From Octopus bimaculoides (Eukaryota), in NCBI RefSeq assembly GCF_001194135.2, contig NC_068994.1, positions 23,480,244-23,517,982 on the forward strand: 37,739 nucleotides of DNA. Direction: 5' to 3'. A program made the translations under genes and the position numbers. The first letter of the stretch is position 1. Each line of letters starts with the position of its first letter. Positions 31,454 through 32,593 of this stretch are shown one piece after another. The notes below the pieces were generated by a model. That model saw only the letters and a list, made by a program, of their open reading frames with translations. It ran no database searches and had not been told where the DNA came from.

Positions 31454-31718
31454 TATATATTTATATTGTGTAGGTATCAGTTAGAGGGGTTTAATACCGC
31501 TAAGGGATAATTAAATCCAAAGTCGCTCCTGGTTATTACCTGGGTAGGTACAGTCTTTTGTAATGTTGTACAGTAGCAGGTGGTTGGGTTGGTAAACCGT
31601 AGTTTAGGTTATATATGAGAAGAAAATGTATGTAATAACAAGGGGAAACTCGTGGTTTTCGCTGGTATGCCTTCAATTTTATTAGATAACAAAGAATGAG
31701 GAAGCAGAGATGAAGGAA

Positions 31719-31769
31719 GTAATTACGATCGTTTCGTTTTACTGGTTTAAGTAAATCTCTTCAGAATGC
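31719..31769 (-). ncRNA. Minimal type I hammerhead ribozyme, intact core, damaged stem I
   Basis: GCATT-CTGAAGA-GATTTACT(TAAACC)AGTAAAAC-GAAAC-GATC-GTA-ATTAC. Predicted cleavage between 31724 and 31723. Confidence 0.8.
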
Positions 31770-31799
31770 ATATATAGATAGATGCATCTATCTATATTT

Positions 31800-31850
31800 G
31801 CCTTCTGAAAAGATTTACTTAAACCAGAAAAGCGAAACGATCGTAAATGC
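31800..31850 (+). ncRNA. Minimal type I hammerhead ribozyme, G8-to-A core mutant
   Basis: GCCTT-CTGAAAA-GATTTACT(TAAACC)AGAAAAGC-GAAAC-GATC-GTA-AATGC. AATAAA follows at 31886-31891. Confidence 0.7.
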
Positions 31851-32593
31851 TACCTTCATTTCTGCTTCCTCCTTCTTTGTTATCTAATAAAATTGAAGGC
31901 ATACCAGCGAAAACCACGAGTTTCCCCTTGTTATTACATACATTTTCTTTTCCTCGCCATGATAGATCGCTGACCACTATATTTATATTTNNNNNNNNNN
32001 ATATATATATATATATATAACGTCTGTGTGAATAGATTTTGCTGCTGCTACCATGGCTTGTATTTCTGTGGTATTTCTGAGACATTTGGAAAGTATATTC
32101 CTGAATAGCTTTATCTACACCGAGAGGAAATAATTTTTGTTAGAGTATTTTGTTCTACTACATCAGTTATTTTGTCTTTTTTGTCCCTTGATTAATGCTG
32201 CAATAAATTTTTAATATAAAATGTGTTCCTTGTACATATTTGATATGTCCATTATCCCTAGCCGTAATAATAACAGCAAAAAACAAAACAAAAGGAAGTA
32301 CAGTCATTGTTACAAAAGTCAAATTAATTATAATAGTAACTACATTGTAACCAGAATTATTTTGAAACCCCTGTGGGGATAATACAGAAAATAAAAAAAA
32401 AACTTGGACATATACATATTATCAGTACATAATTATCAGTAACTGTAATCAACGGAAGTTATGGAACCTTTGTGGTCTATTTGGCATCATGGTTGGGTGA
32501 TGCAACATCATACGAAAGGTCGTTATATGAGAAAATCAATACCCCTTCACAATTAGTCGGACAGTGAAATTACACTGCATTCAGCTACATTCA

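Follow-up and report, generated by a model that had tools for sequence, protein, structure and literature searches.

A spacer-less palindrome that probably joins two sister copies of a hammerhead-bearing repeat at their 5′ ends

A 336-bp palindrome in the window (the whole 37,739-nucleotide stretch of DNA that was analysed) probably consists of two sister copies of a retroposon that carries a minimal hammerhead ribozyme of the type known from Penelope-like elements (PLEs), joined 5′ to 5′ where both are truncated, at GATG/CATC. The locus is a decaying insertion relic whose present function is not demonstrated, and we saw no sign of such function. This is a known and ordinary arrangement for PLEs and no new kind of system. 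The work adds a hammerhead-bearing repeat family common to four related species and documents, in clear form, the inverted 5′ copies that characterise PLEs, here with a junction within an 8-bp palindrome that hints at how such inversions form. It also provides a worked example of a motif that was missed by curated RNA models and broken in both local copies, yet could be recovered from the family-majority letters of raw sequencing runs.

The palindrome and the hammerhead motifs in its arms

An earlier note, made from the letters of the window, had claimed a near-perfect palindrome of 336 bp without a spacer, and this structure is real. The inverted repeat 31617-31784/31785-31952 has 168-nt arms that are 93% complementary, with 0 nt between them and GATG/CATC at the centre. 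A base-by-base comparison of the arms yielded 11 mismatches, all substitutions with zero indels, at distances (d) of 14, 18, 26, 44, 48, 63, 65, 68, 76, 88, and 166 nt from the centre, and complementarity ended abruptly at both outer edges. The outer ~76 bp, which had been described as identical, are nearly so, with a single mismatch at d166. There was no further (third) copy of the arm within the window, which belongs to a draft scaffold and has ~33% GC, many simple repeats, and nine N gaps. The immediate surroundings of the palindrome are TA-rich and microsatellite-like.

As proposed, a minimal type I hammerhead motif can be read outward in each arm, in the order stem I, CUGAA(G/A)A, a 7-bp stem II with an 8-nt loop, GAAA, C-GAUC-G, UA, and the second strand of stem I. 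The left motif lies on the minus strand (31769-31719, d16-d66) and reads GCAUU CUGAAGA GAUUUAC-UUAAACCA-GUAAAAC GAAA C-GAUC-G UA AUUAC, with predicted cleavage at GUA/A between 31724 and 31723. The right motif lies on the plus strand (31800-31850, likewise d16-d66) and reads GCCUU CUGAAAA GAUUUAC-UUAAACCA-GAAAAGC GAAA C-GAUC-G UA AAUGC, with predicted cleavage between 31845 and 31846. While the left motif retains the full conserved core (CUGAAGA, GAAA, GUA), only three of its five stem I pairs can form, the 3′ strand being AUUAC, and stem II contains an A-A mismatch. In the right motif, G8 of the core is replaced by A (CUGAAAA), stem I has four of five pairs, and stem II has two mismatches. 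Neither copy alone therefore has the complete 5-bp stem I, as had been noted, and 11 of 14 canonical pairs are formed in each arm. Changes at C3 or G8 abolish cleavage by a PLE hammerhead (PMC11167929). Judged from their sequences, both local hammerheads are disabled by their substitutions.

A strict hammerhead descriptor, applied to both strands of the whole window, gave a single match, the left arm, where 0.02-0.06 sites are expected per composition-matched random window. The Rfam hammerhead models did not recover either arm: there was no match in the window at the gathering score, and none at E up to 10 on 801 nt or on each 65-nt arm motif alone. Generic long-hairpin miRNA models and weak chance matches were all that Rfam returned. 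Canonical descriptors are known to miss minimal hammerheads of PLEs (PMC4209133). Only a handful of RNA reads, some with a shared start position, map to the locus, and these few showed no pile-up of read ends at the predicted cleavage sites 31723/31724 and 31845/31846; PLE hammerheads likewise lack such a pile-up in published RNA-seq (PMC11167929).

The repeat family and the truncation of both copies

Logan contigs and raw reads from nine runs of organisms A, B, C, and D were placed on the region, and the arm proved to be a member of a dispersed repeat family of roughly 100-400 copies, common to these four related species. In organism A (run X1), summed depth was 2,000-18,500 over 31470-31950 compared to ~48 on the single-copy flank 32050-32250, a depth ratio that corresponds to ~40-400 family copies, varying by segment. 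Ratios to single-copy depth were similar in organisms B, C, and D. The family sequence is known as per-position majority letters, not as individual copies, and at the positions that damage the local motifs these letters are the ones that a hammerhead needs. Stem I (GCAUU/AAUGC) is restored by A at d18, d63, and d68 and G at d65, the core (CUGAAGA) by G at d26, and stem II by T at d44 and d48, with the same majority letters in organisms B, C, and D as in organism A. The complete hammerhead that the earlier note had assembled from the consensus of the two arms is thus independently matched by the family majority in four species, which forms 14 of 14 canonical pairs with stem I open and has a complete core. 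The AATAAA that had been reported after each hammerhead is present in both arms (31886-31891, with a mirror copy at 31678-31683) but is specific to the palindrome locus, the family majority being ATTAAA.

In the majority sequence, helix I is GCAUU/AAUGC (5 bp) and helix II is GAUUUAC/GUAAAU(C/U) (7 bp), the latter beginning directly after CUGAAGA with no unpaired nucleotide between A9 and 10.1. Pair 10.1-11.1 is G-C in both arms, and T at d49, which makes it G-U, accounts for ~66-72% of family depth. CpG decay was considered as the cause of this T and dropped, since the family retains its other CpGs well. An unconstrained co-fold of two majority copies gave a double hammerhead at -28.2 kcal/mol, compared to 2 x -8.6 kcal/mol, in which helix III is an 8-bp intermolecular duplex of ACGAUCGU. 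Because ACGAUCGU is self-complementary, a dimeric active form is implied. Some family copies are transcribed (15 X32 reads). Scans with the family pattern gave 0 matches in metagenomes and 0 in viral contigs; one metagenome match to a looser pattern lay inside a gut bacterial coding region and was discarded as chance.

The left copy of the repeat occupies 31468-31784 on the minus strand (d1-d317, 317 bp) and is 5′-truncated at the centre. Its 3′ end lies at ~31453-31468, summed depth dropping within 31440-31475, where the flanks are heterogeneous. The right copy, on the plus strand at 31785-31952 (d1-d168, 168 bp), has the same 5′ truncation point and is cut short on its 3′ side: it is a shortened piece, since other family copies go on past 31949-31954 with CTCATATATAACCTAAACTACGG, the reverse complement of the outer flank of the left arm. 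The outer edges of the palindrome were ruled out as element boundaries because family contigs cross 31617 unbroken (X1 pieces 31477-31710 and 31507-31736). A foldback element or MITE with terminal inverted repeats was rejected as well, since copies of the family continue across the left edge and, for the most part, show no inversion at the centre. No target-site duplication was found at the palindrome edges, 31616/31953.

At the fold point lies a self-complementary octamer, GATGCATC (31781-31788), which is also present in ordinary family copies. In nine runs, such copies match to 31786-31788 and then read GGTTAGGATGCGAAAATAATTGATACATAT; the upstream tag of the family is ATATGTATCAATTATTTTCGCATCCTAACCGATG. 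The family extends at least 200 nt upstream of the hammerhead motif, which is positioned ~260 nt from the element 3′ end, and this upstream sequence is absent from the window. Both local copies are 5′-truncated at one point, within the natural octamer GATG/CATC. Truncation of this end is frequent in the family, with depth rising from ~2,000-3,600 at d1-30 to 10,000-18,500 at d50-130. Compared to the family majority, the two arms share six derived states (d15, d49, d85, d105, d111, and d156), and each carries about six private changes, balanced between the arms (d166 was assigned from loose contig ends). The shared states together with the balanced private changes show that the arms are true sister copies that diverged independently.

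The outer flanks contain a 12-bp direct repeat, TATATTTATATT, at 31456-31467 and 31978-31989, both on the plus strand, which is a candidate target-site duplication or a shared repeat tail. It has only two copies in the window compared to 0.05 expected, and repeats of at least 12 bp were found in none of 3000 shuffles or 866 comparable window pairs. A target-site duplication is an uncertain reading of it, given that the right-hand 12-mer is embedded in a repeat of very high copy number (summed depth ~280,000). A 38-bp fragment of this different repeat (31953-31990, plus strand; depth ~264,000-284,000 compared to ~48 for single-copy sequence) adjoins the right copy and is followed by an N10 gap at 31991-32000. 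The 25 bp at 31953-31977, which belong to the ~280,000-depth repeat, could be a PLE-like tail.

Mismatches between the arms cluster towards the centre, with 10 of 11 within d88 (p = 0.007) and a largest gap with p = 0.009, both calculated post hoc. The earlier note had seen in this pattern a recent arm-to-arm conversion; the clustering stands, but conversion is doubtful. The locus has diverged by 6.6% between organisms A and B, and against the expectation from this figure the outer 80 nt of the arms are too similar (1 mismatch vs 5.3 expected, p = 0.03) while the inner 88 nt differ slightly too much (10 vs 5.8 expected, p = 0.07). Each 31-mer from d1 to ~d118 holds an arm-specific variant, and further out there are k-mers common to both arms. 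Because a 31-mer short-read assembler cannot separate the arms beyond ~d118, their outer identity may reflect assembly collapse. The outer arms may instead have undergone gene conversion.

The centre junction and the origin of the inversion

The centre junction exists in the real DNA of at least one individual. A unitig of run X1, which may be the assembly's own library, spans 31740-31888 with 0 differences at a depth of 32, near the single-copy level. A 321-nt contig of organism B, also at single-copy depth, runs across the centre over 31560-31802 at 93.4% identity and then joins 31802 to 31931 at the same depth, which amounts to a 128-bp deletion in the right arm. This suggests that the organism B junction is orthologous or at least homologous to the palindrome centre, and the junction is probably present in a second species. 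No long contig across the centre was found at 88-99% identity in eight further organism A runs (X2-X8, X10, X11, and X13; the 2015 sample with four runs, together with five additional samples), nor was one found in two further organism B runs (X17 and X18); short unitigs tend to fail at 99% identity, and 93% and 88% were used as well. Logan contigs are evidence of presence and cannot prove absence, and the junction may be polymorphic or unstable. Loose ends of organism A contigs that leave near the centre had no match elsewhere in the window, hence no alternative deletion allele was identified.

With a palindrome as reference, a contig that skips from left arm to right arm on one strand marks a head-to-head junction in another copy. 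We observed such further inverted junctions in at least seven contigs from three species, each at single-copy depth: d72/d52, d72/d76, d69/d45, d116/d107, and d16/d101 in organism B, d71/d61 in organism C, and d108/d88 in organism D. Six of the seven were near-symmetric, with left and right distances (dL and dR) differing by at most 24 (p ~0.001 under independence). Near-symmetric inverted 5′ junctions thus look like a habit of the family, and the palindrome in the window is the limiting case, with zero offset at an octamer that is its own complement. Joints that appeared to connect opposite strands were also considered as rearrangements and dismissed; they are ordinary copies in which position along the element is monotonic, and their appearance is an effect of the palindromic reference.

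In the reading that we prefer, the inversion would have arisen during retrotransposition, either through a template switch at GATG/CATC or through two nascent cDNA 3′ ends annealing there. Ends annealed via GATGCATC could each have been extended on the other, which would produce an inverted duplication with zero spacer, and about six private substitutions per arm would afterwards have disabled both ribozymes. The ancestral hammerhead may have acted as a dimer through the ACGAUCGU helix III in processing element RNA, as proposed for PLEs. A more ambitious proposal, which we regard as distinctly unlikely, is that the octamer junction and the recurrent near-symmetric junctions record how PLE-type reverse transcription makes inverted 5′ copies. 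cDNAs from opposite target strands, or a cDNA and its own template, would then anneal by self-complementary microhomology at their 3′ termini, and the annealed partners would copy each other. If true, the family would constitute a natural junction series for testing the microhomology model. In a weaker variant, the hairpin locus may feed small RNAs against the family.

The same joint could have been produced after insertion by chromosomal fold-back repair, in which a break near a single 5′ part is followed by resection, snap-back of the 3′ end at GATGCATC, and synthesis, with no involvement of reverse transcriptase. A fold point exactly in a natural 8-bp palindrome, a short right arm that ends at an unrelated repeat fragment, and the organism B deletion, by which the locus is seen to rearrange, are all consistent with such an event. 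We nevertheless consider it unlikely, because at least seven other copies from three species also carry inverted and mostly near-symmetric junctions, a recurrence that points to the element's own insertion mechanism (cf. PMC8557442) and not to repeated chance breaks. It is highly improbable that the palindrome or its right arm is an artefact of assembly or library construction, either as a fold-back chimera or as a repeat mis-join beside the 31991 gap. One of the nine N gaps of this draft scaffold does lie 38 bp from the end of the arm, the tandem and inverted structures of PLEs cause problems in short-read assemblies (PMC8557442), and long contigs across the centre were missing from the additional runs of organisms A and B. 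Against this, the exactly matching X1 unitig has a depth far above the frequency of chimeric reads, a contig from a different species crosses the same centre, and the balanced private substitutions in the arms are unlike those of a copy-paste error.

Two further alternatives concern the nature of the repeat and the reason for its persistence. The unit is short, non-coding, and AT-rich, and the weak, palindromic helix III of its type I hammerhead implies that the ribozyme works as a dimer (PMC7229834), as might be expected if it were the monomer of a non-LTR retrozyme (tandem and circRNA-forming) instead of a PLE terminal region; animal retrozymes are moreover reported to derive from PLE pseudo-LTRs (pLTRs), and the two classes overlap (bioRxiv 10.64898/2026.07.22.740005). 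However, no head-to-tail joints, which would appear as contigs that go back along the element, were seen among the family contigs, with the upstream part read for 30 nt, and heterogeneous 3′ flanks indicate dispersed copies. Upstream of the motif, the family also continues for 200 nt or more, and a 5-bp helix I and 7-bp helix II without loop-loop contacts represent the minimal PLE type (PMC4209133, PMC7229834), so that a retrozyme origin appears very unlikely. As for persistence, a transcript of either strand is predicted to fold into a near-perfect hairpin of ~168 bp (-253 and -241 kcal/mol, z ~-35) that buries either ribozyme, and the locus might be kept as a hairpin-RNA gene whose dsRNA Dicer would cut into small RNAs, thereby silencing the family. 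The use of such dsRNA by Dicer or ADAR, as suggested in the earlier note, is speculative. The related junction in a second species and the transcription of some family copies would agree with this idea, but the fold is trivial, being automatic for any palindrome, and few RNA reads map to the locus. Loss of most of one arm in organism B and the apparent lack of the junction in several organism A samples argue against constraint, and we find this explanation scarcely credible.

Comparison with Penelope-like elements and other known systems

The earlier note had interpreted the palindrome as a head-to-head duplication of a pLTR. The head-to-head arrangement of a 5′-truncated repeat was borne out, but its identity as a pLTR was not, there being no RT/GIY-YIG ORF among the window ORFs scanned and no Rfam score. 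Similarly, the arm was found to be multicopy, but its suspected linkage to RT/GIY-YIG ORFs was not observed: no such ORF and no Pfam domain of any kind was present among ten plausible ORFs of the window, the nearest of which lies at 33865-34107, ~1.9 kb from the palindrome. The ten include ORF 15921-16220, which we had presumed to be mariner-like. A link to PLEs is plausible from the architecture of the ribozyme and the insertion behaviour of the repeat, with the search for ORFs of the family confined to the window.

In minimal hammerheads of PLEs, helix II measures 7-8 bp and helix I 4-5 bp, G10.1-C11.1 is a conserved pair, A9 is followed by an additional nucleotide, and 15.2-16.2/loop 3 is palindromic (PMC4209133). 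Variants with a small palindromic helix III occur in Drosophila, rotifers, shrimps, and mosquitoes (Cervera & de la Pena 2014, PMC4209133), and Schistosoma mansoni has dual motifs that lie on opposite strands with 100-700 bp between them (PMC4209133). The family resembles these motifs in its open 5-bp stem I, its 7-bp helix II, its core CUGANGA...GAAA, and its self-complementary helix III/loop 3 (ACGAUCGU), and in that the motif occurs genome-wide, mostly singly in truncated copies. It differs in that the unpaired A9-10.1 nucleotide is missing, ~70% of copies have G-U at 10.1-11.1, and both local copies are mutated.

PLE insertions contain pseudo-LTRs and an inverted 5′-truncated copy that adjoins the 5′ end (Craig et al. 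2021, PMC8557442), and a PLE protein has been seen in vitro to nick the two target strands and to extend each of them (PMC11167929). The local copies are likewise head to head and 5′-truncated, inverted junctions recur in the family, the flanking DNA is TA-rich and resembles microsatellites, and the local structure sits beside a gap in a short-read assembly. An inverted 5′ copy was present both at the window locus and at the at least seven other junctions, and frequent 5′ truncation with a defined 3′ end is a property of the family. Unlike in described PLE insertions, the local truncation points coincide exactly at an 8-bp palindrome with zero spacer; no ORF or partial-tandem pLTR was detected at the palindrome locus, and a 30-40-bp tail was not confidently identified there.

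Non-LTR retrozymes form head-to-tail arrays of 150-450-bp units with canonical type I hammerheads (Cervera & de la Pena 2020, PMC7229834), in which helix I has 6 bp, helix II has 4 bp, and there are loop-loop contacts (PMC7229834). The family shares with them a short, AT-rich, non-coding unit, a type I hammerhead that is predicted to be probably dimeric, and a proposed relationship to PLEs, whereas its copies are dispersed and 5′-truncated and its motif belongs to the minimal type. Inverted duplications can also arise by fold-back at short inverted repeats, a general mechanism of genome instability. The palindrome resembles them in having its junction in a short natural palindrome, no spacer, and a later arm deletion in a related species. 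In contrast to such duplications, near-symmetric junctions recur within this one family, which points to the element's own replication.

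Reads across the palindrome centre

The hammerheads lie in two head-to-head repeat copies, and each is followed by AATAAA, at 31886-31891 in the right arm and in mirror position at 31678-31683 in the left. This is a derived state common to both arms. In read-derived majority letters for the dispersed family to which both copies belong, position 31889 is T, giving ATTAAA; AATAAA, in that form, is therefore not a conserved feature of the family.

We found that a contig from X16, a sequencing run of organism B, was collinear with 31560-31802 joined to 31931-31960 and had the same head-to-head centre as the window. 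It carries a 128-bp deletion (19 to 146 nt from the palindrome centre, between 31802 and 31931 in the window) that removes the right-arm hammerhead. The junction was not recovered in two further organism B runs.

Other contigs leave the locus near the centre, around 31735-31790. A 422-nt contig at single-copy depth, observed in two organism A samples (X5 and X10), aligns with the window at 31738-31786, beyond which it runs into GTGATGACGCTCTCTTCATAATTGAAAAAA. A second X5 contig extends to 31799 before continuing into AACTCTTTTATC. Neither continuation matched elsewhere in the window. These contigs could represent other family copies or alternative alleles.

Repeats flanking the composite

On its left, the hammerhead element directly adjoins an ultra-high-copy SINE-like repeat (31243-31467), as judged from contig depth. 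Summed contig depth was ~10 million at 31300-31367 and ~1.2 million at 31368-31469, compared to ~48 for single-copy sequence (flank 32050-32250). Some reads showed a tandem arrangement of this repeat, with a joint going back 152-153 nt, and further copies are present in the window at 8390-8507 and 11580-11656 and, on the minus strand, at 11689-11779, 18954-19015, 23504-23568 and 27031-27100.

The whole composite (31468-31977) is flanked by a 12-bp direct repeat, TATATTTATATT, at 31456-31467 and 31978-31989, its only two occurrences in the window. None of the comparable flank pairs checked against this pair had a 12-bp match. A target-site duplication is one possible reading of the pair. Another is a 3' tail common to two SINE-like repeats, since the right copy sits within a repeat of ~280,000 depth in which the majority letter at 31980 is C.

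Sequence character of the window

Microsatellites, among them (TG/CA)n, (ATAC)n, (AG)n, (ATAG)n and (TA)n, are very dense across the window (for example at 976-1250, 22934-23023, 26000-26200, 32560-32800 and 33400-33700), which is interrupted by nine N gaps of 10-788 bp. This suggests a short-read scaffold with poorly resolved repeat structures. A 100-aa open frame on the minus strand (15921-16220) looks similar to the N-terminus of a mariner/Tc1 transposase; a Pfam scan of it returned no match at E up to 0.01, leaving that identity unconfirmed.
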